Below the pieces are notes generated by a model that was not told the DNA's origin, did no database searches, and was given only the letters and a program-made list of their open reading frames with translations. A stretch of 64,000 nt of DNA from Mustelus asterias (taxonomy: Eukaryota). Every line of letters starts with the position of its first letter. Positions within the stretch are counted from its first letter, which is position 1. The stretch covers positions 109,058,001 through 109,122,000 of the forward strand of contig NC_135809.1 in NCBI RefSeq assembly GCF_964213995.1, in the 5' to 3' direction. A program made the position numbers and the translations under genes. Shown here in pieces: positions 4,082 to 51,081 of this stretch.

Positions 4082-4171
4082 ACACCTCTTCAAACATTCC
4101 CAACAATATTCCGAATGAAATGGGAGTTCAACAGGATGGGAATGAAGGAACAGGGAATCCGGACACTGCAG
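4082..4171 (+). CDS. Old repeat exon a (90 nt): DTSSNIPNNIPNEMGVQQDGNEGTGNPDTA
   Basis: taacAG| ... GCAG|gtgggt, phase 1-1, open; the homologous upstream AG is mutated to CG, so the next AG 9 nt downstream is assumed. Confidence 0.55.
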
Positions 4172-4714
4172 GTGGGTTGATGATCAGGTCCACGACTTTC
4201 AGCAAATATCTTGACTGAAACCTGGTACATATTTAATGGGATGATGCAGTCACACAGTCATCCTCATATTTACATTTAATTAAAGTTCCTTTTGTTAAAT
4301 ATAGAAATTGATTGAACTTTCTGATGCGAACGCCACTGAGGTATCCTGACATTGAAGTACCTTTTCCGATGAATGAAATCGAGGGGAAAAAATCGCCTGT
4401 AAACACGTTGGCAAATTGTATAACAAAACTGAACAATTCTGCCAGTCCTAATTGAAATTAATTGAGGTATATTCAGGGCAGAAAGAAAAAGCAATGAACA
4501 GTTCATATTATCTGTGAGCAAAGGTGTTGCAAAAAAATTAGAATGCTTAATGAAGTACTTATCTGAGAAATAGGGATATTTATCTATGGATTAAAAGCAT
4601 TGAGCTCAACTTAATTCATGTCTATTATTTACATATTTCTAAACAATTATCACTGTACTTTCTGCTTATTTGTGCTAATGGTTTACACTGTCATGTAATC
4701 TCGTGTTCAACTAG

Positions 4715-4810
4715 AATCGACAGATGCCTCGTCAAGCGGTCCAAACAGTACTCCGAGTGAAATGGAAGAACAGAATCAAGATGAAGGAACAAATAATTCG
4801 GATACTGCAG
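4715..4810 (+). CDS. Old repeat exon b (96 nt): ESTDASSSGPNSTPSEMEEQNQDEGTNNSDTA
   Basis: gttcaactAG| ... GCAG|gtgggt, phase 1-1, open. Confidence 0.65.
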
Positions 4811-5263
4811 GTGGGTTGATGTTCCAGTCCAGGAGTTGTGCAAATGCCTTGACTGAAACCTAGTACATATTTGATGGAAAGATTCCACACACAGTCATCA
4901 TCAGATTTGTAAAGATGAAGCTGCTTTTCTTAAGTATAGAAATTGATTGAATTTTCTGATTCGAATACCACTGATGTATCCTGACATTGATGTATCTTAC
5001 TTTTACAATGAGGAAGATCAAGGGAAAAAATAATGCTTGGAAACATCTGGGCAGATTGTGTAACAACACTGAGCAATTCTACCAATACTAATTCAAACTA
5101 ATTGTCTGAGGTACATTCAGGGCAGGAAGAAAAAATGACTAACAGTTCAAACACAGTGTAAGAGAAAATATTGCATAAAAATTAGGGTGCTTAATGACGT
5201 TATTATCTGAGAAATAGGAATATTTATCCATGGATAAGAGGCATTGAGCTCAACTAAACCCAT

Positions 5264-6755
5264 GTTGATTTGATTTATTGTTGTCACCTGCATTAATATA
5301 CAGTGAATGGTATTGTTTCTTGTGTGCTATACATACAAAGCATACTCTACAGAGAAAAAGAAAGGAGAGATGGCAGAATGTATTGTTACAGTTATAGTTA
5401 GGGCATAGAGAAAGATCAGTTTAATACGAGGTAGGTCCATTTAAAAGTCTGAAGGCAGCAGGGAAGAAGCTGTTCTTGAGTCGGTTGGTACGTGATCTCA
5501 GACTTTTATATCTTTCTCCCGATGAAAGAAGGTGGAAAAGAATATGTCCAGGGTGCGTGGGGTCTTTGATTATGCTGGCTGCTTTCCCAAGGCAGTGGGA
5601 AGTGTAGACAGAGTCAACGGATGGGAAGCTGGTTTGCGTAATGGACTGGACTTTAGCCTTCTGAGAAGGTGGAGGTAGGGTGTCCATTTCCAAATTTCCA
5701 AAAAGGAGGAATTGCACACACACACAGGCCCCAGCCTCCCGCCAACAACAACATCCGCTCAGCCAGCCTCCCCGCGTCGCGTCATCATCGGAAACCGTCC
5801 GGAAACAGCCGAGCGCACCATTGCGTCATCCTCGGCAGCGTCTCCCCGCCCTCCCGAGTCAGCTTTGGCCACCCGCCGGAAATAGCCGGAGATCTCCGGG
5901 AGAGTCTCTCCGACCGATTCCACCCACCCCCAACACGTCATCTTCGGCAGTCTCCCCCTCCCCGAGTCAGCTTTGGCCAGCCGCCGGAAATAGCCAAAGA
6001 TCTCCTGGAGAGCTGCTCTGACCGATTCCATCCATCCGCCACCCGCCCCCCACCCCCCGCGTCATCTTGGGCAACGTGCCGGCTCAGACCAGAACGTCAT
6101 CGCGTCACCATCTGTGCTCCCCCCGACTCATCTTCGGATCCCTCCGGAAACAACTGAGCGCTTGGACACTCGCCCATTGCGTCAGCTTCGGCAAGCGCCT
6201 CCACACAGCCGAGAACGTCACCACCCACCCGAGCATGCCCGACTCATCTTCAGCCACCGATCGGAATGAGCCGAGGGCGCTGCGTTCTGACCGAGCATTG
6301 CGTCATCTTCGGAGGCACGGAAGTTGCGTCACCAGCCTTTGGGCACTCCACGGAATGAAGCTGACTTCGGAAATCCTCCGGAAAGAGCCGAGCGCCTGCC
6401 CTTTTTTAGTCAGACCCAAAAAAGGAGGACAAATTAACGTCCGGCTCGAGGTGGCGCCGGACGGAGGTCAGAGTGCTCAAAAGCCGGACTGTCCGGCCTA
6501 AAGCCGGACGTCTGGCCTCCCTAGGTGGAGGTGTTGGTGGGCTTTCTTCACTTTTGCGTTAGAGTGGAGTGACCAGGACAGGTGATCTGGACACCGAGAA
6601 ACTTAAAGCTCTCGACCATTTCCACTTCATCCTCATTGGTGTGGACGACGGCATGTCCTCAACTATGCTTCCTGAAGTCGATCAGTCCCTCCTTCGTTTT
6701 GCGGACATTAAGGGAGAGATTATTGTTGTTGTCGCAACAGTTCACCAGATTCTCA
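5264..6755 (-). mobile_element. Rex1/Babar-type LINE 3' fragment interrupted by an hAT-type MITE
   Basis: ORF 5421-5723 HCLGKAASIIKDPTHPGH...RTNRLKNSFFPAAFRLLN; (atttg)n tail near 5266; RT-distal sequence resumes at 6532-6755. Confidence 0.8.
5676..6523. mobile_element. Non-autonomous hAT-type DNA transposon (848 bp)
   Basis: Termini TAGGGTGTCCA / TGGCCTCCCTA; perfect 8-bp TSD GGTGGAGG (5668-5675, 6524-6531); internal ~110-bp direct repeat. Confidence 0.85.
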
Positions 6756-7593
6756 GGCCGGGATTTGACCATCGCATTGCGCCCATTTTCGGGCGCGAAA
6801 ATTTGGTAAAGTCGGGCATGAGGCGAGTAGCGCGATCTGTACCCGTTTCTGCGCTGGTTCGCACTTTGCTAAGGTCAAAAATGGGCGCAATCAGGAACCT
6901 GTACAAAATGGGCGCGACGGCCATTTAAATAATTCTGCCTGTATTTCAATCCACTGAACAAGCTACTTTACCAGCACGACTGCCTTTACCACCGCGTTTG
7001 CCCAATCCGGAATTGGTCTAGAACAGACTAGCTTGATGAAAGTCCGATTCTAGTGCTCCTTCAGTGAGGGTTAGTAAGGAGGTAAGTGTCTACCATTGGA
7101 CAGCTCCGTGCTGCTCCCAGGGGGGTCCTTTCGTGGCAGCCATGTTGCATTTCAGGTTGGGACGGCTCTGCGAGTGTGTGGGGAGGTGGGGAGCTGTTGC
7201 CTCAGCAAGGTGTCTGATGTCCAATTTGCAACACGGACCCGGGTCTCAGCACTGACCTTGGGTCTTGGGGACGCTGCTGGGTCCTGGTGCAAGCAGCACT
7301 CTTCCAGCTGAAGGATGTGCTGGAGGCCCTTGCAAATGACAGTGCTGCAGCCTCAGACTTTTTCAAGCAGCAGTGTCTGTGCTAACTACTGCATGAGTTC
7401 TGGGTGTGTATTGCTAGGGGGAGGATGGGAAGTCTGTGTTGCTGAGGGATGGGGGGCTGTGTTGCTCGGGGCATGTGGGGCTGGAAGTGGGGGAATGGGC
7501 AGTATGTGTTGCTGTGCAAGGGGCAAGCAGCATTCCTTAATCTCTCCATGTGTTTCTCCCATTTACCAAATCTGCCCTCCTTCAGATTGACGA

Positions 7594-8500
7594 GATGGCT
7601 TTTGTGATGCAACCGATTGATCTTGGCTGTCTCCCTCTACTCCTGCGAGTGGTAAGGCATGGGCCTCCTTGCCTGCAATTCATATTCCCAGTCAGCTGTC
7701 CACACCTGTGTCAAGGGGGTCACATATGCCCGGGCTGGCCAGTATATCAAATTTGGCCTGGACCAGGCCCAGCAGGAAGCTAGGGCTGCAGGATTCACGG
7801 CCATTGCAGGGATACCTAATGTGCAGAGGCTATCGACTGCACCCACATCGCCCTCAAGGCCCCGTTTCAGAATCCACAAAGTTTCATCAATAGAAAGGGG
7901 TTCCACTCCCTAAATATCCAATTGGTTTGAGACCACAAGATGAACATCATGCACGTCTGCGCCAGACACCCCAGCAGCATGCATGACAGTTTTATTCTGA
8001 GGTGATCAGACATTCCGGAGGCCTTTGAGGAGGAGCCCAGGGTGCAGGGATGGCTCATGGGTGACATGGGGTACCCGCTTCGGACTTGGCTGATGACGCC
8101 TGGGTGGAGGCCTGAGACTCAGATGAAGAGCCGGTATAATGAGGCCCAAATTGCCACCCGCTCTATCGTGGAGAGGTGAATAGGGCTCAAGAAAATGTGG
8201 TTCAGGTGCCTGGACCGCTGTGGCGGGGCCCTACAACACAGCCCCCTGATTTCTTCCTGCATTGTGGTGGTGTGCTGTGCCCAACACAACCTGGTGCAGC
8301 AGAGCGGTGACCTTTTAGAGGAGGAGGAGGACATGGAGGCTGGTCACTGGGGAGAAGGCCACCTAGCAGGAGGAGGAGGAAGAGGAGGAGGACCATACCG
8401 AGCAACACCACCCAGGCGCTGGAGGGTTGGCAGCAAGAATCAGACATTCAAGGGCAGCGAGGAAGGCCCTGATCGCCAGGCGCTTTGCTTACTAGTGGCC
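7594..8500 (+). pseudogene. Harbinger (HARBI1-like) DDE transposase pseudogene
   Basis: [15 protein letters not shown] across a frameshift, [36 protein letters not shown]; N-terminal part deleted; stops and frameshifts. Confidence 0.88.
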
Positions 8501-8682
8501 TGTGTTTCTGCACGCAGGTTCCATTTCCACCCCCCGCCCCCGACCAAAGTCCTCTTATCTCCTGCAACATTGTAACACCAAAGTGGTGGGCCTGGATATG
8601 CTGTGTTCGTGAGTTTCTTTGGCAGGCAGGAGGGTGATGACAACTTGTTAAGCAGCATTGTGATGATGCCCTGGTCCAAACT

Positions 8683-9074
8683 GATGAAGAGGAGGCAATG
8701 GCCTAGTGGTATTATCACTAGACTATTAATCTAGAAACTCCGCTAATGTTCTGGGCACATGGGTTCAAATCCCACCACAGCAGCTGGTGAAATTTGAATT
8801 CAGTAAAAAAATATTTGGAATTAAGAATTTACTGATGACCATGAAATCATTGTCGATTGTTGGAAAAACCCATCTGGTTCACTAATGTCCTTTAGGGAAG
8901 TCTGCCGTCCTTATCTGGTCTGGCCTACATGTGACTCCAGAGCCACAGCAATGTGGTTGACTCTCAACTGCCCTCTGAAATGGCCTAGCAAGCCACTCTG
9001 TTCAAGGGCAACAAGGAATGGGCAATAAATGCTGGCCTGCCAGTGACACCCTAATCCCACGAATGAATAAAAAA
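8683..9074 (+). mobile_element. tRNA-derived SINE inserted in the Harbinger element
   Basis: A box TGGCCTAGTGG (8699), B box GGTTCAAATCC (8762), A-rich tail, AAACT duplication; empty site visible in the second Harbinger copy (about 63176). Confidence 0.85.
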
Positions 9075-9490
9075 AAACTAGTCTGATTCCTACCTGAGGT
9101 CCACATACACCTGGGCCCACGTCTGTGTAGTGGGTAAGGGATCAGTGAACCCCCATAAAGGACCCCGGGGTGGGTGCGGTGGGGGAATGGAATCGCTCAT
9201 GGGTTCTGAGAAACCGATGGCTTTTCTCAGTGACACAGCGTTGAGGAACCTCCCCAACTGACACCAACATGAAGGATCCGTCCAGCGACCGTCAAGGATA
9301 CAGGATCCCTGTTTGAGGCAAATCTGCGAAAAATTAGTCACAGGTGGGTGGTGAAAAAACATTTTTATTGATTACAATAAAAGTGTCTAAATAATAAGTT
9401 GTAACATAAAAACGTGTGAACAGAAAACATTAAGGTGCTTAATAACCTACCTAACAAGTGCAGCCCTTCACCCATGCTATCTTAGTGCAA

Positions 9491-10665
9491 CTACAACTTC
9501 CTAACCTTACGTGGCTTAGCACTACATCTTGGTGTCTCCCCAGAATGTACATTGGAGATGGAGGGGGCTAGCTGTTTACCATGCCTCGTGGTCTGTGATG
9601 CTTGTGGCGGGCGTCTTCTGGACAGCCTGGATCTTGAGTGACCTGGCCGGCTTCCAGGTGTCTGGGACGTATCCGTGACACCCTCTTCAACCCACTGCCT
9701 CTGAGATGCCCTGGTGTCAGGAAGGGGGGAATCAGAAGGTGTAGCCATAGTCACAGTCTCCTGGCTGGAAAGCCTCGGCATGGGCTCGAGCCCTTCCTCC
9801 GCCCTTGGGGTTCCTGTGGGCCCCTGGGTCACTCCATGGGATGGCAGTGCTTCTGTACTGAGCTCCAGAACCTCCGGCACCACCTGGCCCTGCTAGTCCT
9901 GGAGGACCACCTGCATCCTACCCATGGTAGTTGAGCACTCTGCGATCGCCACTTGAGTCGGGGGTCACCTGTCAATGGTCGCAGCAAGTGCCCTCTGAGA
10001 TTGGACCACACTCTGCAGCCCCTCAGCCATGACCCTCTGTGACTGGGCCATGTTTTCTAGGGCTGCTGCATTAGCCCGCTATGTCTCAGGGCTGTCTCTC
10101 TGGGTCTCATGCAAGCTCTGGAGCCTCTTAGCCATGGGAGGTAAAACCTAGAGAAGCCTGTTGAGACCCTCAACCGTGGCCCACTGTGTCTCAGCCGTGG
10201 CCCTCTGGGACTCCACTGTGACCAACTGTGACCTGGCCATTGCTTGGAGCCTGCCACTCATGGTGAGGATCCCCTGCTTTCCACTGCAGACAGAACCCTT
10301 GCAGTGTTGGCCTGGGAATCACACAAGACAGGCAATATCTGGTCCGCCTGAAAGCTTTGGGACTCCTCCCAACATCCTCACAATCGGTCCAGTGTGGCCG
10401 TCAGCCCCTCCTGCATACCCTGGCTCTGTTGCTGCATCTCCAGCAGCTGAGGGAGAAGTGATTTCAGAGGCCTGGCATGTAGCCTGTGGCCAGCTGAGTC
10501 CTCGCCTCCGGCAGGCCTCCGCATGCTAGAGGGCTCAGACATTCCCTCCTCCACCCGATGTACATTATCAGATGTTTTGTGCTCACCAGAGAGTGACCCA
10601 GAAGCTTCATCACTAACTGGACCCACCGATGTGAGAGTATCTGGGATGGTGAGTTGTGAGGTGGA
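9491..10665 (-). pseudogene. Harbinger second ORF remnant (the ORF that normally encodes the Myb/SANT-like partner), C-terminal part
   Basis: Fragmented ORFs convergent with the transposase, coiled-coil-like LLEMQQQSQGMQEGLTATLDRL, basic C-terminus; homologous to 63684-63992; the Myb domain itself is not visible. Confidence 0.6.
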
Positions 10666-11367
10666 AGCTGACGCCAAAAAGGGGCCACCCTTGGAGGCAA
10701 AAAATGGGCCCAAAAGGCGGATCTTAAACTCCCCTAGTTTCAAGTCCACCCAGCACTTAGACAAAAAATAGTAAAATAGCGCCCAAAGTTCTGAGACCGA
10801 ATGACCCTTTGTCAGAGCTGAAGACAATACGAAGTAGGATGCAGCAAAAAGACAGCGGCTGCTGAAGATCGGAGATATTGACAAAGATGTCATAGACACA
10901 CAAACAAAGAGAATGTAAATGGTAGTGATCATGGCGAAGAAGGGTGCTGGTAGCCAAGAAGGGGATGTTGGTCATGTTGGTGTTTCGGTGCATCTGCTGC
11001 CTTTGTTGTTATGGATCTCAGTAGTTGCGAACTTGGAAGCTGCCCTTGAAGAAGTTGTATTCGACCAAATAAAACAGTGCATAATTTATTGATGGTGTGG
11101 AATGTAGAAGACTATTCCAGTTAGCAATAGCCTAAACTTGTCATCAGGTCAACAGAATTCCTTCAAGGTTGTGACCCTGAACAAACTAATGGGTGCAATA
11201 GATGGTGGACGCAATAAATGTGATGAAATGCTTTACGTCTCATTGAAAGACGTGGAAAGAATTGTTTCTCGCTGAGGCCTTGATCTGAAAATTGTGGCTT
11301 CAAGTATTCTTTTGACACATTAGCTAAATCATTTAGAAATGTTGTCTGCCTGCCAGAAGGAAATGGG

Positions 11368-11696
11368 TGCTTACCTCCTCACTAACCCTGACTGATGGGG
11401 CGCCCAAATTGGACATATATGGAGCATGTCTGTTTTGCATCGATTCTGGATGGGCAAACACAGTGGTAAAGGGGGAATTGCCGGTAAAGTTGGGTGTGCA
11501 GCCCTTTAAGTCAATTTAAATGCATGCAAATTGATTTAAATGGCCGTTGTGCCCATTTCGTGCGCCATCCCAATCGTGGCCATGAATGAGCCTTGGTGAA
11601 GAGGGAACTGGCATGGAGGCTGGCGCAGATCACGCTACTCGTCCCATGCCCGACTCCACCAAGTTTTCTGGCCCAAAAACGGGCGCAACGCGATTG
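11368..11696 (-). mobile_element. Inverted Harbinger left-subterminal fragment inside the first array unit
   Basis: Reverse complement of 6770-7090 and 49170-49470 type sequence. Confidence 0.75.
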
Positions 11697-12551
11697 TTTT
11701 CTGCCAATCAGAAGGAAATGGGTTCATGTTTTAGTCGAGGATATTGAGTAAATGTTTTGACTGCAACCTGGTACATTTTTGTGATGGAATGATGTCAACA
11801 GATCGCCAGAATTTCTTCAGGTTTGTGACCCTTAACAAAGTAATGGGTGCAATAGATGGTGGACGCAATACATGTGATGAAATGCATTACGTACAATTGA
11901 AAGAGGGGGTAAGAATTGTTTCTCACTGAGGCATTGATTTGACAACTGTGGCTTCATGTCTTCTTAGACACATTAGCTCAGTCATTCAGAAGTGTTGTCT
12001 GCCAATCAGAAGGAAATGGGTTGATGTACTAGTCCAGGATATTGATTAAATATCTTGACTGAAACCCGGTACATTTCTGTGATGGAATGATGCAGTTAGA
12101 GTCATCCTCATATTTGCATTGGATAAAGCTGCTTTTTTCAAATACAGAAACTGATTTCCATTTCCAATTAGAATGCCCGTTGATGTGTCTTGACATTGAA
12201 GTACCTTTCGTTCCCAATGTTCATGATCCAGGAAAATATTTTGCTCATGAATTCCAGGGCAAATTGGATATCAAAGTTGTGGAATTTTACAGGTAATATT
12301 TGAAACAAATTGTCTGAGCTATATTGAGGGATAGCAGTTAATACTGACGATGAGGAAATAAAAAATGCATGATGCTTGGGATCCTTAATGTAGCACTTAC
12401 CTAAGGAATAGGAATATCTAACCATAGATAAACAAGCAAGGAGGTTAACTAAATTCATGTGCAATATTTGCAATTTAGCCAAAAGCCTTGTTATCACTGT
12501 TCTTTCTACTCCATAACACAATGAGTTTACATTATCATGGTGTACATGTAG

Positions 12552-12644
12552 ACACAATGCGAACATCTTTAGATGAACCAAATGATACTGTGCATAAAGC
12601 TCCAACTGATCAGATTCAAGGACCAAAGGATCAGGAAAATAAAG
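12552..12644 (+). CDS. Repeat exon 1: DTMRTSLDEPNDTVHKAPTDQIQGPKDQENK
   Basis: catgtAG| 93 nt AAAG|gtgggt, phase 1-1, open. Confidence 0.7.
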
Positions 12645-14565
12645 GTGGGTTCAATGAAGAAATATCAAAGGTGCAAAGATTTTATTCATTCATGGTCTGA
12701 GGAACAATGTATAACGTTGAGTTCAATTTCTATTTGTATTGATGTGTTAAGACAGGTTCTGGTTACATTTGTACTTTTTTCTGAGTATGGTCCTGCGGAG
12801 TCTGGAGGCATTCCTTGTATTGTCATGAAGATAGAGGAAGTTTAAATGATCTATATTTGTATTGTTAAGTATTAGAAGTGAGGCTTAATTTAGTCTTGCT
12901 GTGGAAGGAAGTAAGGAGCTGCAGTTAGATTCATGTCATGCAAAGTATTTTGCATCTCGGGTGCAGATAATTTAGGAAGAAAAAATAAGTGGAAACAAGA
13001 ATCCCTGTTATTCAGTCCCAGCGTTCCCGGGCACACAAAGACACAGGGAATGGCAGAATTGCTGTCCTCTGTCTATATGACAGGGAGTGAAGACAGAAGC
13101 TCTGCACTCTCAGATTGTAAATTGAGCAACTTTGCTGAGGAGCAGATTGTGGACAACTCCTGCGTTGGAGTCACAGTTGCGAAAGTCCATATGGTGTAGG
13201 TGTATCCGAAGAGCCTTTGGGGATGTTGTTAGAGGTTTTCAGCCCTGTGACAATGTAGAAATGGACGCATCTTTCCAAGACAGGAATTTGTCAAACGTAA
13301 AGGGGAGTTTAAAAGCAAATTACTGTGGGTTCTGGAATCTGAACCAAAAACAGAAATGCGCGAAATCTCCGCAGGTCTGACAGCATCCGTGGAGAGAGAA
13401 CAGAGCTAATGTTTTGAGTCTCGATGATCTTTTGTCAGAGCTGAAGGCAATAGAAAGTAGGATGAGATTTAGACTGTTGTGGTGAGGGGTGTGGGGGACC
13501 CGTCGGGGCTGGATAGAGAGCCAGAGGTTGGTGAAGGCGGAGAAATTGACAAAGATATTATCGACAGAAAAATGTAGGGAATGTAAATGGTGGTGATCAT
13601 TGCGAAGAAGAATGCTGAGAGCTAAGAAGGGGACGTTGGCCATGTTGGCGTTTCGGTGCCCCTGCTGCCCTTATTGTTGTGGATCTCAGTAGTTGCGATC
13701 TTGAAGCTGCCCTTGAAGAAGTTGTATACGACCAAAAAACCAAAGTATTATTCATCGATGGTGTGGAATGTAGGAAGGTATTCCAGTTAGCTCTAGCCTA
13801 AACATGTCAACAGGTCACTAGAATTTCTTCACGTTTGTGACCCTTAGCAAAGTAATGGGTGCAAGAGATGGTGGACGCAATAAATGTGATGAAATGCATT
13901 ACGTACAATTGAAAGAGGGGGTAAGAATTGTTTCTCATTGAGGCATTGATCTGACAACTGTGGCTTCATGTATTCTTAGACACATTAGGTAAGTCATTCA
14001 GAAATGTTGTCTGCCAATCAGAAGGAAATGGGTTCATGTACGAATCCAGGATATTGAATAAATATCTTGACTGAAGCCCGGTACATTTCTGTGATGGAAT
14101 GCTGCAGTTAGAGTCATCCTCATATTTGCATTGGATAAAGCTGCTTTTTTCAAATACAGAAACTGATTTCCATTTCCAATTAGAATGCCCCTTGATATGT
14201 CCTGACATTGAAGTACCTTTCGTTCACAATGTTCATGATCCAGGAAAATATTTTGCTCATGAATTCCAGGGCAATTTGGAAAACAAGTTGTGGAATTTTA
14301 CAGATAGTATTTGAAACAAATTGCCTGAGCTATATTGAGGGATAACAGTTAATACTGACTATGAGGAATTAAAAAAATGCATGATGCTTGGGATCCTTAA
14401 TGTAGCACTTACCTAAGGAATCGGAATATCTAACCATAGATAAAGAAGCATGGAGGTCAACTAAATTCATGTGCAATATTTGCATTTGAGCCAATGTACT
14501 TCACTGTACTTTCTACTCCATAACATAATGAGTTTACATTATCATGGGTTTTGGTGTTCATATAG

Positions 14566-14658
14566 ACCCAAAGGGAACATCTTCAGATCAAGCAGGGGAT
14601 ACTGTGCATCAAGCTCCATGGGATCAGAATCAAGGAGCAAAGGATCAGGGAAATAAAG
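14566..14658 (+). CDS. Repeat exon 2: DPKGTSSDQAGDTVHQAPWDQNQGAKDQGNK
   Basis: catatAG| 93 nt AAAG|gtgggt, open. Confidence 0.7.
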
Positions 14659-16565
14659 GTGGGTTCAATGAAGAAATATCAAAGATGCAAAGATTTTATT
14701 CATTCATGGTCTGAGGAACAATGTATAACGTTGAGTTCAATTTATATTTCTATTGATGTGTTAAGACAGGTTCTGGTTACATTTGTAGTTTTTTCTGAGT
14801 GTGGTCCTGCGGAGTCTGGAGGCATTCCTTGTATTTTCATGAAGGTAGAGGTAGTTTAAATGGTCTATATTTGTATTGTTAAGTATTAGAAGTGAGGCTT
14901 AATTTAGTCTTGCTGTGTAAGGAAGCAAGGAGCTGCAGTTAGATTCATGTCATGCAAAGTATTTTGCATCTGGGGTGCAGATAATTTCGGAAGAAAAAAT
15001 AAGTGGAAACAAGAATCCCTGTTATTCAGTCCCAGCGTTCCTGGGCACACAAAGACACAGGGAATGGCAGAATTGCTGTCCTCTGTCTATATGACAGGGA
15101 GTGAAGACAGAAGCTCTGCACTCTCAGATTGTAAATTGAGCAACTTTCCTGAGGAGCAGTTTGTGGACAACTCCTGCGTTGAAGTCATAGTTGCGACAGT
15201 CCATATGGTGTAGGTGTATCCGAAGAGCCTTTGGGGATGTTGTTAGAGGTTTTCAGCCCTGTGACAATGCAGAAATGGGCGCATCTTTCCAAGACAGGTA
15301 TTTGTCAAATGTAAAGGGGAGTTGGAAAGCAAATTACTGCGGGTCTGGAATCTGAACCAAAAACAGAAATGCGAGAAATCTCCGCAGGTCTGACAGCATC
15401 TGTGGAGAGAGAACAGAGCTAATGTTTTGAGTCTCGATGATCTTTTGTCAGAGCTGAAGGCAATAGAAAGTAGGATGAGATTTAGACTGTTGTGGTGAGG
15501 GGTGTGAGGGACCCGTCGGGGCTGGATAGAGAGCCAGCGGTTGGTGAAGACGGAGAAATTGACAAAGATATTATCGACAGAAAAATGTAGGGAATGTAAA
15601 TGGTGGTGATCATTGCTAAGAAGGATGCTGAGAGCTAAGAAGGGTACGTTGGCCATGTTGGCATTTCGGTGCCCCTGCTGCCCTTATTGTTGTGGATCTC
15701 AGTAGTTGCGATCTTGAAGCTGCCCTTGAAGAAGTTGTATACGACCAAAAAACCAAAGTATTATTCATCGACGGTGTGGAATGTAGGAAGGTATTCCAGT
15801 TAGCTCTAGCCTAAACATGTCAACAGGTCACTAGAATTTCTTCACGTTTGTGACCCTTAGCAAAGTAATGGGTGCAATAGATGGTGGACGCAATAAATGT
15901 GATGAAATGCATTACGTACAATTGAAAGAGGGGGTAAGAATTGTTTCTCACTGAGGCCTTGATCTGACAACTGTGGCTTCATGTATTCTTAGACACATTA
16001 GGTAAGTCGTTCAGAAATGTTGTCTGCCAATCAGAAGGAAATGGGTTGATGTACTAGTCCAGGATATTGAGTAAATATCTTGACTGAAGCCCGGTACATT
16101 TCTGTGATGGAATGCTGCAGTTAGAGTCATCCTCATATTTGCATTGGATAAAGCTGCTTTTTTCAAATACAGAACCTGATTTCCATTTCCAATTAGAATG
16201 CCCTTTGATGTGTCTTGACATTGAAGTACCTTTCGTTCACAATGTTCATGATCCAGGAAAATATTTTGCTCATGAATTCCAGGGCAAATTGGATAACAAA
16301 GTTGTGGAATTTTACAGATAATATTTGAAACAAATTGTCTGAGCTCTATTGCGGGATAGCAGTTAATACTGACGATGAGGAAATAAAAAATGCATGATGC
16401 TTGGGATCCTTAATGTAGCACTTACCTAAGGAATCGGAATATCTAACCATAGATAAAGAGGCAAATTCATGTGCAATATTTGCATTTGAGCCAATGTACT
16501 TCACTGTACTTTCTACTCCATAACACAATGAGTTTACATTATCATGGATTTTGGTGTTCATATAG

Positions 16566-16658
16566 ACCCAAGGGGAACATCTTCAGATCAACCAGGCGAT
16601 ACTGTGCATAAAGCTCCACCGGATCAGAATCAAGGAGGAAAGGATGAGGAAAATAAAG
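16566..16658 (+). CDS. Repeat exon 3: DPRGTSSDQPGDTVHKAPPDQNQGGKDEENK
   Basis: AG/GT flanked, 93 nt, open. Confidence 0.7.
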
Positions 16659-18564
16659 GTGGGTTCAATGAAGAAATATCAAAGATGCAAAGATTTTATT
16701 CATTCATGGTCTGAGGAACAATGTATAACGTTGAGTTCAATTTCTATTTGTATTGATGTGTTAAGACAGGTTCTGGTTACATTTGTAGTTGTTTCTGAGT
16801 GTAGTCCTGCGGAGTCTGGAGGCATTCCTTGTATTTTCATGAAGGTAGAGGTCGTTTAAATGGTCTATATTTGTATTGTTAAGTATTAGAAGTGAGGCTT
16901 AATTTAGTCTTGCTGTGTAAGGAAGTAAGGAGCTGCAGTTAGATTCATGTCATGCAAAGTATTTTGCATCTCGGGTGCAGATAATTTAGGAAGAAAAAAT
17001 AAGTGGAAACAAGAATCCCTGTTATTCAGTCCCAGCGTTCCTGGGCACACAACGACACAGGGAATGGCAGAATTGCTGTCCTCTGTCTATATGACAGGGA
17101 GTGAAGACAGAAGCTCTGCACTCTCAGATTGTAAATTGAGCAACTTTCCTGAGGAGCAGTTTGTGGACAACTCCTGCGTTGAAGTCATAGTTGCGACAGT
17201 CCATATGGTGTAGGTGTATCCGAAGAGCCTTTGGGGATGTTGTTAGAGGTTTTCAGCCCTGTGACAATGTAGAAATGGGCGCATCTTTCCAAGACAGGTA
17301 TTTGTCAAATGTAAAGAGGAGTTTGAAAGCAAATTACTGCGGGTCTGGAATCTGAACCAAAAACAGAAATGCGAGAAATCTCCGCAGGTCTGACAGCATC
17401 TGTGGAGAGAGAACAGAGCTAATGTTTTGAGTCTCGATGATCTTTTGTCAGAGCTGAAGGCAATAGAAAGTAGGATGAGATTTAGACTGTTGTGGTGAGG
17501 GGTGTGGGGGACCCGTCGGGGCTGGATAGAGAGCCAGAGGTTGGTGAAGACGGAGAAATTGACAAAGATATTATCGACAGAAAAATGTAGGGAATGTAAA
17601 TGGTGGTGATCATTGCTAAGAAGAATGCTGAGAGCTCAGAAGGGGACGTTGGCCATGTTGGCATTTCGGTGCCCCTGCTGCCCTTATTGTTGTGGATCTC
17701 AGTAGTTGCGATCTTGAAGCTGCCCTTGAAGAAGTTGTATACGACCAAAAAACCAAAGTATTATTCATCGATGGTATGGAATGTAGGAAGGTATTCCAGT
17801 TAGCTATCGCATAAACGTGTCAACAGGTCCTAGAATTTCTTCACGTTTGTGACCCTTAGCAAAGTAATGGGTGCAATAGATGGTGGACGCAATAAATGTG
17901 ATGAAATGCATTACGTACAATTGAAAGAGGGGGTAAGAATTGTTTCTCACTGAGGCCTTGATCTGACAACTGTGGCTTCATGTATTCTTAGCCACATTAG
18001 CCAAGTCGTTCAGAAATGTTGTCTGCCAATCAGAAGGAAATGGGTTGATGTACTAGTCCAGGATATTGAGTAAATATCTTGACTGAAGCCCGGTACATTT
18101 CTGTGATGAAATGCTGCAGTTAGAGTCATCCTCATATTTGCATTGGATAAAGCTGCTTTTTTCAAATAAAGAAACTGATTTCCATTTCCAATTAGAATGC
18201 CCTTTGATGTGTCTTGACATTGAAGTACCATTCGTTCACAATGTTCATGATCCAGGAAAATATTTTGCTCATGAATTCCAGGGCAAATTGGATAACAAAG
18301 TTGTGGAATTTTACAGATAATATTTGAAACAAATTGTCTGAGCTCTATTGCGGGATAGCAGTTAATACTGACTATGAGGAAATAAAAAATGCATGATGCT
18401 TGGGATCCTTAATATAGCACTTACCTAAGGAATCGGAATATCTAACCATAGATAAAGAGGCAAATTCATGTGCAATATTTGCATTTGAGCCAATGTACTT
18501 CACTGTACTTTCTACTCCATAACACAATGAGTTTACATTATCATGGATTTTGGTGTTCATATAG

Positions 18565-18657
18565 ACCCAAGGGGAACATCTTCAGATCAACCAGGCAATA
18601 CTGTGCATGAAGCTCCATCGGATCAGAATCAAGGAGCAAAGGATGAGGAAAATAAAG
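18565..18657 (+). CDS. Repeat exon 4 (type B): DPRGTSSDQPGNTVHEAPSDQNQGAKDEENK
   Basis: AG/GT flanked, 93 nt, open. Confidence 0.7.
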
Positions 18658-20563: not shown

Positions 20564-20656
20564 ACCCAAGGGGAACATCTTCAGATCAACCAGGCAATAC
20601 TGTGCATGAAGCTCCATCGGATCAGAATCAAGGAGCAAAGGATGAGGAAAATAAAG
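20564..20656 (+). CDS. Repeat exon 5 (type B, identical to exon 4)
   Basis: AG/GT flanked, 93 nt, open. Confidence 0.7.
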
Positions 20657-22555: not shown

Positions 22556-22648
22556 ACCCAAGGGAAACATCTTCAGATCAACCAGGCAATACTGTGCATG
22601 AAGCTCCATCGGATCAGAATCAAGGAGCAAAGGATGAGGAAAATAAAG
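22556..22648 (+). CDS. Repeat exon 6 (type B, G4E)
   Basis: AG/GT flanked, 93 nt, open. Confidence 0.7.
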
Positions 22649-24552
22649 GTGGGTTCAATGAAGAAATATCAAAGATGCAAAGATTTTATTCATTCATGGT
22701 CTGAGGAACAATGTATAACGTTGAGTTCAATTTCTATTTGTATTGATGTGTTGTGACTGGTTCTGGTTACATTTGTACTTTTTTCTGAGTATGGTCCTGC
22801 GGAGTCTGGAGGCATTCCTTGTATTTTCATGAAGATAGAGGTAGTTTAAATGATCTATATTTGTATTGTTAAGTATTAAAAGTGAGGCTTAATTTAGTCT
22901 TGCTGTGTAAGGAAGTAAGGAGCTGCAGTTAGATTCATGTCATGCAAAGTATTTTGCATCTCGGGTGCAGATAATTTAGGAAGAAAACATAAGTGGAAAC
23001 AAGAATCCCTGTTATTCAGTCCCAGCGTTCCTGGGCACACAAAGACACAGGGAATGGCAGAATTGCTGTCCTCTGTCTATATGACAGGGAGTGAAGACAG
23101 AAGCTCTGCACTCTCAGATTGTAAATTGAGCAACTTTCCTGAGGAGCAGTTTGTGGACAACTCCTGCGTTGAAGTCATAGTTGCGACAGTCCATATGGTG
23201 TAGGTGTATCCGAAGAGCCTTTGGGGATGTTGTTAGAGGTTTTCAGCCCTGTGACAATGCAGAAATGGGCGCATCTTTCCAAGACAGGTATTTGTCAAAT
23301 GTAAAGGGGAGTTTGAAAGCAAATTACTGCGGGTCTGGAATCTGAACCAAAAACAGAAATGCGAGAAATCTCCGCAGGTCTGACAGCATCTGTGGAGAGA
23401 GAACAGAGCTAATGTTTTGAGTCTCGATGATCTTTTGTCAGAGCTGAAGGCAATAGAAAGTAGGATGAGATTTAGACTGTTGTGGTGAGGGGTGTGGGGG
23501 ACCCGTCGGGGCTGGATAGAGAGCCAGAGGTTGGTGAAGACGGAGAATTTGACAAAGATATTATCGACAGAAAAATGTAGGGAATGTAAATGGTGGTGAT
23601 CATTGCTAAGAAGAATGCTGAGAGCTAAGAAGGGGACGTTGGCCATGTTGGCGTTTCGGTGCCCCTGCTGCCCTTATTGTTGTGGATCTCAGTAGTTGCG
23701 ATCTTGAAGCTGCCCTTGAAGAAGTTGTATACGACCAAAAAACCAAAGTATTATTCATCGATGGTATGGAATGTAGGAAGGTATTCCAGTTAGCTATCGC
23801 ATAAACGTGTCAACAGGTCCTAGAATTTCTTCACGTTTGTGACCCTTAGCAAAGTAATGGGTGCAATAGATGGTGGACGCAATAAATGTGATGAAATGCA
23901 TTACGTACAATTGAAAGAGGGGGTAAGAATTGTTTCTCACTGAGGCCTTGATCTGACAACTGTGGCTTCATGTATTCTTAGACACATTAGCCAAGTCGTT
24001 CAGAAATGTTGTCTGCCAATCAGAAGGAAATGGGTTGATGTACTAGTCCAGGATATTGAGTAAATATCTTGACTGAAGCCCGGTACATTTCTGTGATGGA
24101 ATGCTGCAGTTAGTCATCCTCATATTTGCATTGGATAAAGCTGCTTTTTTCAAATAAAGAAACTGATTTCCATTTCCAATTAGAATGCCCTTTGATGTGT
24201 CTTGACATTGAAGTACCTTTCGTTCACAATGTTCATGATCCAGGAAAATATTTTGCTCATGAATTCCAGGGCAAATTGGATAACAAAGTTGTGGAATTTT
24301 ACAGATAATATTTGAAACAAATTGTCTGAGCTCTATTGCGGGATAGCAGTTAATACTGACTATGAGGAAATAAAAAATGCAAGATGCTTGGGATCCTTAA
24401 TATAGCACTTACCTAAGGAATCGGAATATCTAACCATAGATAAAGAGGCAAATTCATGTGCAATATTTGCATTTGAGCCAATGTACTTCACTGTACTTTC
24501 TACTCCATAACACAATGAGTTTACATTATCATGGATTTTGGTGTTCATATAG

Positions 24553-24645
24553 ACCCAAGGGGAACATCTTCAGATCAAGCAGGCGATACTGTGCATCAAG
24601 CTCCATGGGATCAGAATCAAGGAGCAAAGGATCAGGGAAATAAAG
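24553..24645 (+). CDS. Repeat exon 7 (type A): DPRGTSSDQAGDTVHQAPWDQNQGAKDQGNK
   Basis: AG/GT flanked, 93 nt, open. Confidence 0.7.
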
Positions 24646-26551: not shown

Positions 26552-26644
26552 ACCCAAGGGGAACATCTTCAGATCAAGCAGGCGATACTGTGCATCAAGC
26601 TCCATGGGATCAGAATCAAGGAGCAAAGGATCAGGGAAATAAAG
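26552..26644 (+). CDS. Repeat exon 8 (type A)
   Basis: AG/GT flanked, 93 nt, open. Confidence 0.7.
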
Positions 26645-28543: not shown

Positions 28544-28636
28544 ACCCAAGGGGAACATCTTCAGATCAAGCAGGCGATACTGTGCATCAAGCTCCATGGG
28601 ATCAGAATCAAGGAGCAAAGGATCAGGGAAATAAAG
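28544..28636 (+). CDS. Repeat exon 9 (type A)
   Basis: AG/GT flanked, 93 nt, open. Confidence 0.7.
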
Positions 28637-30542: not shown

Positions 30543-30635
30543 ACCCAAGGGGAACATCTTCAGATCAAGCAGGCGATACTGTGCATCAAGCTCCATGGGA
30601 TCAGAATCAAGGAGCAAAGGATCAGGGAAATAAAG
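30543..30635 (+). CDS. Repeat exon 10 (type A)
   Basis: AG/GT flanked, 93 nt, open. Confidence 0.7.
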
Positions 30636-32534: not shown

Positions 32535-32627
32535 ACCCAAGGCGAACATCTTCAGATCAACCAGGCAATACTGTGCATGAAGCTCCATCGGATCAGAATC
32601 AAGGAGCAAAGGATGAGGAAAATAAAG
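32535..32627 (+). CDS. Repeat exon 11 (type B, G4R)
   Basis: AG/GT flanked, 93 nt, open. Confidence 0.7.
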
Positions 32628-34546
32628 GTGGGTTCAATGAAGAAATATCAAAGATGCAAAGATTTTATTCATTCATGGTCTGAGGAACAATGTATAACGT
32701 TGAGTTCAATTTCTATTTGTATTGATGTGTTAAGACAGGTTCTGGTTACATTTGTACTTTTTTCTGAGTATGGTCCTGCGGAGTCTGGAGGCATTCCTTG
32801 TATTTTCATGAAGATAGAGGTAGTTTAAATGATCTCTATTTGTATTGTTAAGTATTAGAAGTGAGGCTTAATTTAGTCTTGCTGTGTAAGGAAGTAAGGA
32901 GCTGCAGTTAGATTCATGTCATGCAAAGTATTTTGCATCTCGGGTGCAGATAATTTAGGAAGAAAAAATAAGTGGAAACAAGAATCCCTGTTATTCAGTC
33001 CCAGCGTTCCTGGGCACACAAAGACACAGGGAATGGCAGAATTGCTGTCCTCTGTCTATATGACAGGGAGTGAAGACAGAAGCTCTGCACTCTCAGATTG
33101 TAAATTGAGCAACTTTGCTGAGGAGCAGTTTGTGGACAACTCCTGCGTTGAAGTCATAGTTGCGACAGTCCATATGGTGTAGGTGTATCCGAAGAGCCTT
33201 TGGGGATGTTGTTAGAGGTTTTCAGCCCTGTGACAATGTAGAAATGGGCGCATCTTTCCAAGACAGGTATTTGTCAAATGTAAAGGGGAGTTTGAAAGCA
33301 AATTACTGCGGGTCTGGAATCTGAACCAAAAACAGAAATGCGAGAAATCTCCGCAGGTCTGACAGCATCTGTGGAGAGAGAACAGAGCTAATGTTTTGAG
33401 TCTCGATGATCTTTTGTCAGAGCTGAAGGCAATAGAAAGTAGGATGAGATTTAGACTGTTGTGGTGAGGGGTGTGGGGGACCCGTCGGGGCTGGATAGAG
33501 AGCCAGAGGTTGGTGAAGACGGAGAAATTGACAAAGATATTATCGACAGAAAAATGTAGGGAATGTAAATGGTGGTGATCATTGCTAAGAAGAATGCTGA
33601 GAGCTAAGAAGGGGACGTTGGCCATGTTGGCGTTTCGGTGCCCCTGCTGCCCTTATTGTTGTGGATCTCAGTAGTTGCGATCTTGAAGCTGCCCTTGAAG
33701 AAGTTGTATACGACCAAAAAACCAAAGTATTATTCATCGATGGTATGGAATGTAGGAAGGTATTCCAGTTAGCTATCGCATAAACGTGTCAACAGGTCCT
33801 AGAATTTCTTCACGTTTGTGACCCTTAGCAAAGTAATGGGTGCAATAGATGGTGGACGCAATAAATGTGATGAAATGCATTACGTACAATTGAAAGAGGG
33901 GGTAAGAATTGTTTCTCACTGAGGCATTGATCTGACAACTGTGGCTTCATGTATTCTTAGACACATTAGCTTAGTCATTCAGAAATGTTGTTTGCCAATC
34001 AGAAGGAAATGGGTTGATGTACTAGTCCAGGATATTGAGTAAATATCTTGACTGAAGCCCGGTACATTTCTGTGATGGAATGATGCAGTTAGAGTCATCC
34101 TCATATTTGCATTGGATAAAGCTGCTTTTTTCAAATACAGAACCTGATTTCCATTTCCAATTAGAATGCCCTTTGATGTGTCTTGACATTGAAGTACCTT
34201 TCGTTCACAATGTTCATGATCCAGGAAAATATTTTGCTCATGAATTCCAGGGCAAATTGGATAACAAAGTTGTGGAATTTTACAGATAATATTTGAAACA
34301 AATTGTCTGAGCTATATTGCGGGATAGCAATTAATACTGACGATGAGGAAATAAAAAATGCATGATGCTTGGGATCCTTAATGTAGCACTTACCTAAGGA
34401 ATCGGAATATCTAACCATAGATAAAGAAGCAAGGAGGTCAACTAAATTCATGTGCAATATTTGCATTTGAGCCAATGTACTTCACTGTACTTTCTACTCC
34501 ATAACACAATGAGTTTACATTATCATGGATTTTGGTGTTCATATAG

Positions 34547-34639
34547 ACCCAAGGGGAACATCTTCAGATCAAGCAGGCGATACTGTGCATCAAGCTCCAT
34601 GGGATCAGAATCAAGGAGCAAAGGATCAGGGAAATAAAG
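34547..34639 (+). CDS. Repeat exon 12 (type A)
   Basis: AG/GT flanked, 93 nt, open. Confidence 0.7.
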
Positions 34640-36558
34640 GTGGGTTCAATGAAGAAATATCAAAGATGCAAAGATTTTATTCATTCATGGTCTGAGGAAC
34701 AATGTATAACGTTGAGTTCAATTTCTATTTGTATTGATGTGTTAAGACAGGTTCTGGTTACATTTGTAGTTGTTTCTGAGTGTAGTCCTGCGGAGTCTGG
34801 AGGCATTCCTTGTATTTTCATGAAGGTAGAGGTCGTTTAAATGGTCTATATTTGTATTGTTAAGTATTAGAAGTGAGGCTTAATTTAGTCTTGCTGTGTA
34901 AGGAAGCAAGGAGCTGCAGTTAGATTCATGTCATGCAAAGTATTTTGCATCTGGGGTGCAGATAATTTAGGAAGAAAAAATAAGTGGAAACAAGAATCCC
35001 TGTTATTCAGTCCCAGCGTTCCTGGGCACACAACGACACAGGGAATGGCAGAATTGCTGTCCTCTGTCTACATGACAGGGAGTGAAGACAGAAGCTCTGC
35101 ACTCTCAGATTGTAAATTGAGCAACTTTGCTGAGGAGCAGTTTGTGGACAACTCCTGCGTTGAAGTCATAGTTGCGACAGTCCATATGGTGTAGGTGTAT
35201 CCGAAGAGCCTTTGGGGATGTTGTTAGAGGTTTTCAGCCCTGTGACAATGTAGAAATGGGCGCATCTTTCCAAGACAGGTATTTGTCAAATGTAAAGGGG
35301 AGTTTGAAAGCAAATTACTGCGGGTCTGGAATCTGAACCAAAAACAGAAATGCGAGAAATCTCCGCAGGTCTGACAGCATCTGTGGAGAGAGAACAGAGC
35401 TAATGTTTTGAGTCTCGATGATCTTTTGTCAGAGCTGAAGGCAATAGAAAGTAGGATGAGATTTAGACTGTTGTGGTGAGGGGTGTGGGGGACCCGTCGG
35501 GGCTGGATAGAGAGCCAGAGGTTGGTGAAGACGGAGAAATTGACAAAGATATTATCGACAGAAAAATGTAGGGAATGTAAATGGTGGTGATCATTGCTAA
35601 GAAGAATGCTGAGAGCTAAGAAGGGTACGTTGGCCATGTTGGCGTTTCGGTGCCCCTGCTGCCCTTATTGTTGTGGATCTCAGTAGTTGCGATCTTGAAG
35701 CTGCCCTTGAAGAAGTTGTATACGACCAAAAAACCAAAGTATTATTCATCGATGGTATGGAATGTAGGAAGGTATTCCAGTTAGCTATCGCATAAACGTG
35801 TCAACAGGTCCTAGAATTTCTTCACGTTTGTGACCCTTAGCAAAGTAATGGGTGCAATAGATGGTGGACGCAATAAATGTGATGAAATGCATTACGTACA
35901 ATTGAAAGAGGGGGTAAGAATTGTTTCTCACTGAGGCATTGATCTGACAACTGTGGCTTCATGTATTCTTAGACACATTAGCTAAGTCATTCAGAAATGT
36001 TGTCTGCCAATCAGAAGGAAATGGGTTGATGTACTAGTCCAGGATATTGAGTAAATATCTTGACTGAAGCCCGGTACATTTCTGTGATGGAATGATGCAG
36101 TTAGAGTAATCCTCATATTTGCATTGGATAAAGCTGCTTTTTTCAAATACAGAACCTGATTTCCATTTCCAATTAGAATGCCCTTTGATGTGTCTTGACA
36201 TTGAAGTACCTTTCGTTCACAATGTTCATGATCCAGGAAAATATTTTGCTCATGAATTCCAGGGCAAATTGGATAACAAAGTTGTGGAATTTTACAGATA
36301 ATATTTGAAACAAATTGTCTGAGCTATATTGCGGGATAGCAGTTAATACTGACGATGAGGAAATAAAAAATGCATGATGCTTGGGATCCTTAATGTAGCA
36401 CTTACCTAAGGAATCGGAATATCTAACCATAGATAAAGAAGCAAGGAGGTCAACTAAATTCATGTGCAATATTTGCATTTGAGCCAATGTACTTCACTGT
36501 ACTTTCTACTCCATAACACAATGAGTTTACATTATCATGGATTTTGGTGTTCATATAG

Positions 36559-36651
36559 ACCCAAGGGGAACATCTTCAGATCAAGCAGGCGATACTGTGC
36601 ATCAAGCTCCATGGGATCAGAATCAAGGAGCAAAGGATCAGGGAAATAAAG
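36559..36651 (+). CDS. Repeat exon 13 (type A)
   Basis: AG/GT flanked, 93 nt, open. Confidence 0.7.
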
Positions 36652-38561
36652 GTGGGTTCAATGAAGAAATATCAAAGATGCAAAGATTTTATTCATTCAT
36701 GGTCTGAGGAACAATGTATAACGTTGAGTTCAATTTCTATTTGTATTGATGTGTTAAGACAGGTTCTGGTTACATTTGTAGTTGTTTCTGAGTGTAGTCC
36801 TGCGGAGTCTGGAGGCATTCCTTGTATTTTCATGAAGGTAGAGGTCGTTTAAATGGTCTATATTTGTATTGTTAAGTATTAGAAGTGAGGCTTAATTTAG
36901 TCTTGCTGTGTAAGGAAGCAAGGAGCTGCAGTTAGATTCATGTCATGCAAAGTATTTTGCATCTGGGGTGCAGATAATTTAGGAAAAAAAAATAAGTGGA
37001 AACAAGAATCCCTGTTATTCAGTCCCAGCGTTCCTGGGCACACAAAGACACAGGGAATGGCAGAATTGCTGTCCTCTGTCTACATGACAGGGAGTGAAGA
37101 CAGAAGCTCTGCACTCTCAGATTGTAAATTGAGCAACTTTGCTGAGGAGCAGTTTGTGGACAACTCCTGCGTTGAAGTCATAGTTGCGACAGTCCATATG
37201 GTGTAGGTGTATCCGAAGAGCCTTTGGGGATGTTGTTAGAGGTTTTCAGCCCTGTGACAATGTAGAAATGGGTGCATCTTTCCAAGACAGGTATTTGTCA
37301 GATGTAAAGGGGAGTTTAAAAGCAAATTACTGCGGGTTCTGGAATCTGAACCAAAAACAGAAATGTTAGAAATCTCCGCAGGTCTGACAGCATCTGTGGA
37401 GAGAGAACAAAGCAATGTTTTGTGTCTCGATGATCTTTTGTCAGAGCTGAAGGCAATAGAAAGTAGGATGAGATTTAGACTGTTGTGGTGAAGGGTGTGG
37501 GGGACCCATCGGGGCTGGATAGAGAGCCAGAGGTTGGTGAAGACGGAGAAATTGACAAAGATCTTACCGACAGAAAAATGTAGGGAATGTAAATGGTGGT
37601 GATCATTGCTAAGAAGGATGCTGAGAGCTAAGAAGGGGACATTGGTCATGTTGGCGTTTCGGTGCCCCTGCTGCCCTTATTGTTCTGGATCTCAACAGTT
37701 GCGATCTTGAAGCTGCCCTTGAAGACCAAAAAACCAAAGTATTCTTCATCGATGGTGTGGAATGTAGGAATATATTCCAGTTAGCTATAGCCTAAACATG
37801 TCAACAGTTCGTCAGAATTTCTTCAAGTTTGTGATCTTTTACAAAGTAATGGGTGCACTAAATGGTGGACGCATTGAATGTGATTAAATGCATTACGTAC
37901 TATTGAAAGAGGGGGTAAGAATTGTTTCTCACTGAGGCATTGATCTGACAACTGTGGCTTCATGTATTCTTAGACACATTAGCTAAGTCATTCAGAATTC
38001 TTGTCTGCCAATCAGAGGAGAATGGGTTGATGTAGCAGTCCAGGGTATTGAGTAAATATCTTGACTGAAACCTGGTACTTTTTTTGATGGAATGATGCAG
38101 TTACACAGTCATCCTCATATTTGCATTGGATCAAGTTCCCTTTTTTAAATACAGAAACTGATTTCCATTGCCAATTAGAATGCCCGTTGATGTGTCTTGA
38201 CATTGAAGTACCTTTCTTTTGTCATTTTATGATCCAGGAAAATATTTTGCTCATGAATTCCAGGGCAATTTGTACAACAAAGTTGTGTAATTTTGCAAAT
38301 AATATTTGCAACAAATTGTCTGAGCTATATTGAGGGATAGCAGTTAATACCGACTGTGAGGAAATATAACATACGTAATGCTTGGGATCCTTTCTGCAGC
38401 ACTTACCGAAGAAATAGGAATATCTAACCATCGATAAAGAAGCAAGGAGGTCAACGAAATTCATGTGCAATATTTGCATTTTAGCCAAAAGCCTTATCAC
38501 TATTCTTTCTACTCCCTAACACAATGAGTTTACATTATCATGGATTTTGGTGTTCATGTAG

Positions 38562-38654
38562 ACCCAATGGGAACATCTTCAAATGAATGAAACAATACTT
38601 TGCATAAAGCTTCACCAGATCAGAATCAAAGACCAAAGGAACAGGAAACTAAAG
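38562..38654 (+). CDS. Repeat exon 14 with in-frame stop (DPMGTSSNE*): terminal coding exon or pseudo-exon
   Basis: AG/GT intact, 93 nt, TGA at 38588-38590. Confidence 0.5.
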
Positions 38655-40020: not shown

Positions 40021-40112
40021 TGGGGTCGGCGGGGAGGTGGTGGCGGGGGCGGGTGGGGGGGGGGAGCGTGGTGCACGGGGGGGGGGGGGGGGGGGGGGTG
40101 GCCGGTGGCGGT
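40021..40112 (+). repeat. Expanded G-rich/poly-G tract
   Basis: Long G runs replacing the short ggtgaggggtgtgggg segment of other units. Confidence 0.85.
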
Positions 40113-41904: not shown

Positions 41905-41932
41905 AGTGGAAATCTGAGAGCAAATTTCCACT

Positions 41933-51078: not shown

Positions 51079-51081
51079 TTA

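Follow-up and report, generated by a model that had tools for sequence, protein, structure and literature searches.

A tandemly amplified unit carrying putative 93-nt cassette exons in the 3' part of a B7-like gene of Mustelus asterias

Analysis of a 64,000-nt stretch of Mustelus asterias DNA (NCBI RefSeq assembly GCF_964213995.1, contig NC_135809.1, positions 109,058,001 to 109,122,000 of the forward strand; the whole stretch is called the window, coordinates are counted from its first letter, and features lie on the + strand unless stated otherwise) revealed a tandem array of 2-kb units, each consisting of an intron followed by one 93-nt exon-like segment, downstream of an exon (535-963) for an immunoglobulin (Ig)-fold module of a gene that appears by its relatives to belong to the B7 family. 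The amplified segments are probably real coding cassette exons, a reading to which we give a probability of about 0.6. The array spans 12645-38654 and comprises 13 full units of 1992-2014 bp, as found by blastn of one unit against the window and by a repeat finder that registers 14-15 copies at a spacing of 1992-2014 bp (TRF, whose longest period is 500, is blind to a repeat of ~2.0 kb). Relative to a reference unit, blastn identity is 98.1-99.8% for units 3-13, 96.5% for unit 2 and 92% for unit 14, and the unit pairs (8, 9) and (10, 11) form a recent 4-kb duplicate with 4 and 0 intron differences. The segments c2 to c14, each starting at its end minus 92, end at 14658, 16658, 18657, 20656, 22648, 24645, 26644, 28636, 30635, 32627, 34639, 36651 and 38654. 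The array is headed by an older, diverged 93-nt copy (c1, 12552-12644), open in phase 1 and carrying one frame-0 stop, and is closed by a decayed copy (c14, 38562-38654) with a phase-1 TGA and intact splice sites, in the unit that is 92% identical to the core.

Older versions of the unit flank the array on both sides. A partial unit with 84-91.5% blastn identity (10785-12551) runs into c1, decayed short copies, 64-75% identical to the core unit by blastn, surround two old spacer exons called a and b (2654-5243), and decayed, rearranged units follow the array (38655-46041), where blastn and alignment show that the exon has been deleted from the copy at ~41140. Each 2-kb unit also contains a short dispersed repeat at unit positions ~665-825 (for example 13310-13470 and 15327-15460), probably a SINE-like element that helped to enlarge the unit from ~630 bp to 2 kb. 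The composition of the unit on the + strand is 24.8% G and 15.5% C, and a strong and constant GC skew of +0.20 to +0.27 extends over the array (12000-44000) against 0.03-0.07 in its flanks.

All 14 c-type segments are exactly 93 nt long and are bounded by AG and AAG|GTGGGTTCAATG, and the old exons a (4082-4171, 90 nt) and b (4715-4810, 96 nt), both phase 1-1, begin after AG and end in CAG|GTGGGTTGATG (donor CAG|GTGGGTT). In 17 of 17 copies (a, b, c1-c14 and a further b-like copy, x, discussed below) a branch-like TTTAC motif precedes the acceptor by 22-36 nt, and the interval between motif and acceptor is free of AG in all of them except a, where one AG abuts the motif. Each repeat unit thus contains one whole exon together with its branch site, acceptor and donor (14/14, plus a and b). 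A ~120-nt intronic block upstream of each exon (for example 24433-24552, which contains GAGTTTAC) is better conserved than the exon itself when a, b and x are compared with the c types (identity 0.64-0.78 vs 0.52-0.64). These counts bear out an earlier reading made from the letters alone (hereafter the sequence-only reading), which had described one 93-nt segment per unit with TTTAC, an AG acceptor and an AAG|GTGGGT donor. It had also proposed that copies c1-c13 are stop-free and join in frame in phase 1, the phase in which exon 535-963 ends, and the frame counts agree: a, b and c1-c13 have no stop in phase 1, whereas c14 is interrupted by its TGA (15 of 16 copies open). All exon lengths (90, 93 and 96 nt) are multiples of three and therefore frame-neutral, and its sum of 30 + 32 + 13 x 31 = 465 codons is correct. 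The c-type peptide has 31 residues, is free of Cys, is rich in D, Q, S, G, P, N and K and shows no heptad pattern.

The phase 1-1 exon at 535-963 (429 nt, 142 full codons, acceptor tttatag|TT and donor CAG|gtaatt) is open solely in phase 1 (0 stops vs 9 and 15 in the other frames). Its 142-aa translation matches no Pfam family at E <= 10 and nothing in the PDB sequences better than E 0.16, and a homolog search with this exon alone returned none in the 78-248-aa length band; a HMMER scan of 1.84 billion representatives found 38 relatives. The AlphaFold2 model of the module, built from an 18-row alignment, is all beta with a pLDDT of 91.6, and 490 of its best 500 Foldseek matches in the PDB have E <= 0.001, the top ones being nanobodies, TCR V-beta, MPZ and the sodium-channel beta subunit (TM 0.5-0.6, E ~1e-4). 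The canonical B-F disulfide is absent, with LSWKV at the B strand, AELIFEV at the F strand and no Cys. As modelled, the exon encodes a V-like Ig fold that lacks the canonical disulfide and is located in the tail of the protein.

The named relatives come from Heterodontus, Scyliorhinus, Stegostoma, Heptranchias, Cetorhinus, Mustelus and Callorhinchus, from rays and skates and, more distantly, from frogs and a newt; they are all NCBI 'uncharacterized protein' models of sharks, rays, a chimaera and amphibians. Those that were read share one order: signal peptide, IgV, IgC1, a hydrophobic segment with basic residues, and then 1-7 modules of ~140 aa that are separated and followed by short units rich in D, E, Q, S, G, N and K, often repeated, which form in-frame spacers of 25-36 aa. 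The ectodomain of one relative matches CD276/B7-H3 (2e-23) slightly better than NCR3LG1/B7-H6 (2.5e-21) among solved structures and is assigned by Pfam to V-set plus C1-set, the same domains being precomputed for another member (P0059), which supports, through the relatives, the placement of the present gene in the B7 family. The proposal of an Ig-family immune gene therefore stands as regards the Ig fold and the B7-like relatives, although the exon at 535-963 encodes a V-like module and not an extracellular C1 domain. From their predicted topology the modules of the relatives would be cytoplasmic. Since the module follows the transmembrane segment in these proteins, the repeats would extend a cytoplasmic tail, which we infer for this gene as well, and the idea of a lengthened stalk is not supported.

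The Heterodontus isoform X2 equals X1 minus exactly one 26-aa spacer, which means that cassette skipping is at least modelled in this family. Isoform X3 of Heterodontus francisci (P0041) is without exactly the 31-aa transmembrane exon and keeps the signal peptide, so that a whole string of 'cytoplasmic' V-like modules would be secreted. Outside the cartilaginous fishes, long 'uncharacterized' proteins of Bombina, Dendropsophus and Lissotriton (P0015, P0017 and P0023) match the tail module more weakly but significantly (E 2e-13 to 5e-7), over as many as 8 stretches, indicating that the module is not confined to cartilaginous fishes.

The closest protein is P0059, the annotated model of Mustelus asterias LOC144499271 (717 aa), taken here as the ortholog; a search with its region 543-717 found nothing closer than P0059 itself in the 394-1254-aa band. 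Its residues 543-684 are identical to exon 535-963 at 133 of 142 positions (93.7%), the next residue is the D predicted from the split codon G|AC, and residues 686-714, directly after the module, agree with exon a at 24 of 29 positions (E 9e-21). The junction 963>4082, which had been predicted from the letters, is thus present in this gene model, which supports it and treats exon a as coding. P0059 also contains three a/b-like spacers between its two tail modules, to which exon b is 55-58% identical (E 3e-8 to 5e-5); segments of the a/b type are coding exons in that model.

The amplified exons evolve non-neutrally and with a codon periodicity. Among 12 core units, 12 of 93 exon columns are variable compared with 107 of 1926 elsewhere, and the exon is the most variable non-overlapping 93-nt window of the core unit, while the one directly upstream has 2 variable columns. 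Two sequence types, A and B, differ at 6/93 exon positions and 23/1906 intron positions (p 0.0017), and the core differs from unit 14 at 19/93 and 109/1891 (p 3e-6). The exons are free of indels and change 3.5-5 times faster than their introns; in the older copies the exon gaps span 3, 6 or 9 columns only, whereas the introns carry many other gaps. C-to-G exchanges in either direction account for 8 of 24 variable exon columns vs 11 of 194 intron columns (p 2e-4), yielding Q/E, A/P, S/W and A/G replacements, and the minimum numbers of changes at phase-1 codon positions 1, 2 and 3 are 17, 11 and 5 (p 0.038). Assembly error as the source of the exon differences was rejected as unlikely, the differences being substitutions, many of them C/G exchanges, with no indels.

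Phase 1 gives a coherent picture of these changes. The proportion of synonymous differences in phase 1 (pS) is 0.056 between c14 and c7 and 0.079 between c1 and c7, values near those by which the introns of these units diverge (0.058 and ~0.085), and the non-synonymous proportion (pN) is 0.23 and 0.20; read in frame 0, synonymous differences would amount to 0.46 and 0.20, well beyond the intron rate. Frame 0 had been considered as the true frame, since the changes cluster at its third positions, and it was rejected because it would raise the synonymous rate to 2.4-8 times that of the introns; it also mismatches the phase of exon 535-963, and its translation is unlike the spacers of the family.

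When the six units of type A are set against the four of type B, 6 of the 93 exon columns are fixed for different letters but not one of the 1926 intron columns is, and units 9 and 11 have identical introns and exons that differ at 7 of 93 positions. At least two exon sequence types have been kept while the introns were homogenized, which points to selection on the encoded peptide. These patterns bear directly on the possibility of a silent satellite, in which a spacer exon and its intron would have been amplified within the last intron or just past the 3' end of the gene and would never or hardly be spliced, its open frame being due to youth and a T-poor composition. We regard this as unlikely. 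Such a satellite is expected to change at the intron rate throughout and should not show a fast, indel-free, codon-periodic island bounded by AG and GT, and yet the exon differs from its intron in rate, in substitution spectrum and in codon-position pattern, the types are distinguished by fixed differences in the exon and not in the intron, and the flanks immediately adjoining the exon rank with the most conserved stretches of the unit.

A second alternative is that the segments are spliced but do not encode protein, serving as 3'-untranslated, decay-targeting or decoy cassettes, with their differences imported by gene conversion from functional spacer exons of neighbouring paralogs. We consider it very improbable. 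The stop directly after exon a in P0059 and the c14 stop, 64 nt before an intact donor, would fit such cassettes, as would the shuffling of exon types independently of introns seen between units 9 and 11 and the presence of a paralogous gene close by (IgV exon 60118-60507). Exon b, however, is open in phase 1 over all 32 codons, so that reading would run on into c1; the phase-1 synonymous rate equals the intron rate with the non-synonymous rate raised, as a translated frame predicts, and the window showed no further c-type exon beyond the array.

Under the preferred reading, in which the segments are coding cassettes, the 2-kb repeat would have arisen by recent amplification of an intron together with its exon in the 3' part of a gene resembling B7-H3 and B7-H6. 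Exon 535-963 would be the last V-like module of the tail and exons a and b old spacer exons behind it. One spacer unit may have grown to ~2 kb, partly through the uptake of the dispersed repeat, and the enlarged unit would then have multiplied in tandem, latest in 4-kb steps, giving 13 copies of a 93-nt phase 1-1 exon. Each copy, if spliced into the mRNA, would add 31 Cys-free residues rich in D, Q, S, G, N and K and leave the frame unchanged. Reading would close at the TGA of c14, or at the TAG of copy x if c14 is skipped.

Several observations weigh against this reading, some of them also in favour of a silent satellite. Counted from exon base 1, frame 0 is free of stops in just as many copies as phase 1 (15 of 16, the exception being c1), and the segments are T-poor, with 15% T vs 30% in the remainder of the unit. 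A randomly placed 90-nt window within the repeat region is open ~20% of the time, and the stop-free state is weak evidence alone because the 13 core copies are near-identical and not independent, in addition to the T-poor composition and the open frame 0. The core copies are 98-99.8% identical and hence young. The acceptors of the c type have a weak pyrimidine tract (0.55), and c14 carries its stop in frame. P0059 ends three codons past exon a, before any c-type exon, and the c-type peptide has no match among the 62 fetched proteins with which it was compared (blastp-short, E<0.5), the best match of a c-type HMM to the same 62 being at E 1.5. The relatives are automatic gene models, the window does not reach the ectodomain and transmembrane exons of the gene, and the ENPSQ-type terminal exon present in three relatives was found on neither strand of the window. 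The evolutionary tests rest on few independent events, and exon-limited differences could also result, without expression of the array, if c-type exons at other sites in the genome had acted as donors in gene conversion.

Sequencing reads belong to the same balance. Exon 535-963 is held by no run recorded as RNA; its best holder is run X10 (share 0.97), probably source DNA. Three runs guessed to be RNA of another organism (X1, X3 and X5) and a fourth run of unspecified kind, from another organism (X13), were mapped to 11700-16700 at 85% likeness. The first three have zero depth on c1-c3, with coverage only at the dispersed repeat (13310-13470 and 15327-15460), and no joint 12644>14566 or 14658>16566 is listed in any of the four; the X13 bin with c2 likewise has a depth of 0. 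The dispersed repeat draws very many contigs in all four runs, with a summed depth of up to 86443 in X13. In X13, moreover, 12564-12644 is covered at a depth of 257 by a 123-nt contig that has 12 mismatches there and whose match stops exactly at the donor, leaving 42 letters unplaced, and the bin with c3 has a depth of 220. Nearby intron contigs of this run have depths of 2-8 (2.4 for the contig on 11987-12461), so that the exon-limited depth is ~100 times that of the neighbouring intron contig, which is not expected from a silent satellite. The contigs show neither strand nor ends, and the X13 signal is a hint, no proof, and agrees with splicing and expression of a c-type exon in a related species.

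The 3' end of the gene may lie at copy x (45366-45517), a b-like exon whose phase-1 reading extends over 50 codons to a TAG at 45515-45517. This copy has the best pyrimidine tract (0.75), a good acceptor and no GT at the homologous donor place, and is followed by ATTAAA at 45622 (105 nt past the TAG) and AATAAA at 45765, making it a candidate terminal coding exon. Searching the window with the proteins of the relatives (tblastn) matched just two places, one being the tail module and the other an IgV exon (60118-60507), and the gene must therefore end between them. The IgV exon shares 65% identity with the N-terminal V domain of P0002 and 41-52% with several further relatives, and is assigned to the next gene, which indicates that B7-like genes lie head to tail here; it also gives weak Pfam V-set/I-set matches.

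GC-rich blocks at 5244-10784, ~48000-52000 and 60800-64000 (0.53-0.56 vs ~0.40) interrupt the decayed units. A Harbinger-type transposase is indicated by an open reading frame (ORF) at 62483-62962 with a match to DDE_Tnp_4 (6e-17), and ORFs of this sort are present at 7659-7913 as well; a transposon seems to have inserted into the intron between exon b and c1, giving rise to the block there. Reverse-transcriptase fragments are found at 2074-2547 on the - strand and at 57665-58276 on the + strand (RVT_1, ~2e-18), and an ORF listed with them (39205-39636, +), without Pfam match, interrupts the first decayed unit after the array. A G-rich 40-nt tandem repeat (5.9 copies, 90% matches) occupies 61387-61623, and a search of Rfam returned no RNA family in the window.

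Tandem growth of coding units has known counterparts. In the human LPA gene, the kringle IV-2 repeat is a multi-kb tandem unit containing whole in-frame exons, and protein length follows copy number; that unit contains two exons encoding a folded extracellular kringle, whereas the unit described here has one exon for a short, probably disordered segment and is known from one assembly. The PEVK region of titin is built from many short symmetric exons of ~28 disordered residues each, used combinatorially beside disulfide-free intracellular Ig domains; unlike the present locus, it belongs to a muscle protein rather than a B7-like membrane protein, has a different composition and shows no sequence relation. 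Closest are P0059 and the other NCBI relatives, with the same tail module, the same module-to-spacer junction, tandem spacers of 25-36 aa and a B7-like ectodomain; they have at most a handful of consecutive spacers, compared with the 15 that would result here from a 26-kb array.

The cytoplasmic tails of chicken BG proteins are encoded by 13-36 small exons of 21 or 24 nt, presumed to form coiled-coil heptads, and exon number differs among genes, tail variation being linked to function (PMC4046983). The sequence-only reading had not recognised its arrangement as described for B7-family genes; the BG family, of the B7/butyrophilin superfamily, provides the closest printed precedent, a membrane protein with a long tail made of many small frame-neutral exons (PMC4046983). 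The BG tails consist of 21/24-nt heptad exons and have no Ig-fold modules, whereas the present locus has polar exons of 90-96 nt in near-identical 2-kb units after a V-like module. In nurse shark UrIg2, near-identical exon duplicates arose from recent tandem duplication of adjacent exons (PMC12227049); these are extracellular C1 exons with three duplications of an exon pair, unlike a 13-fold spacer array. A description of the tail architecture of this family was not found in the literature searched, which did not cover the main shark B7H6 papers, and it may have been described. What may be new is the exon-bearing tandem amplification in the tail of a B7-superfamily gene, the principle being already known from chicken BG.

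The contrast between exon and intron within one array offers a clean natural experiment on selection versus homogenization in tandem repeats. Should the exons prove silent, the locus would still warn that splice-ready, open and frame-neutral segments can persist in a satellite. If they are used, tail growth in a vertebrate immune gene has been caught in progress, with 13 copies whose introns are ~1% and whose exons are up to 7.5% apart, and the locus points to an unstudied family of cartilaginous fishes and amphibians whose tails consist of disulfide-free V-like modules and polar spacers. It is tentatively possible, although doubtful at present, that the array is an exon-bearing macrosatellite whose exon copies are held apart by selection even as unequal exchange makes their introns uniform. 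The gene would then be a B7-like gene of the NK-ligand type with a germline tail varying by copy number, by exon skipping and by diversifying selection on the 31-aa modules, which would be secreted in transmembrane-less isoforms. Were that so, it would represent a new route for an immune gene to vary outside its binding domain.

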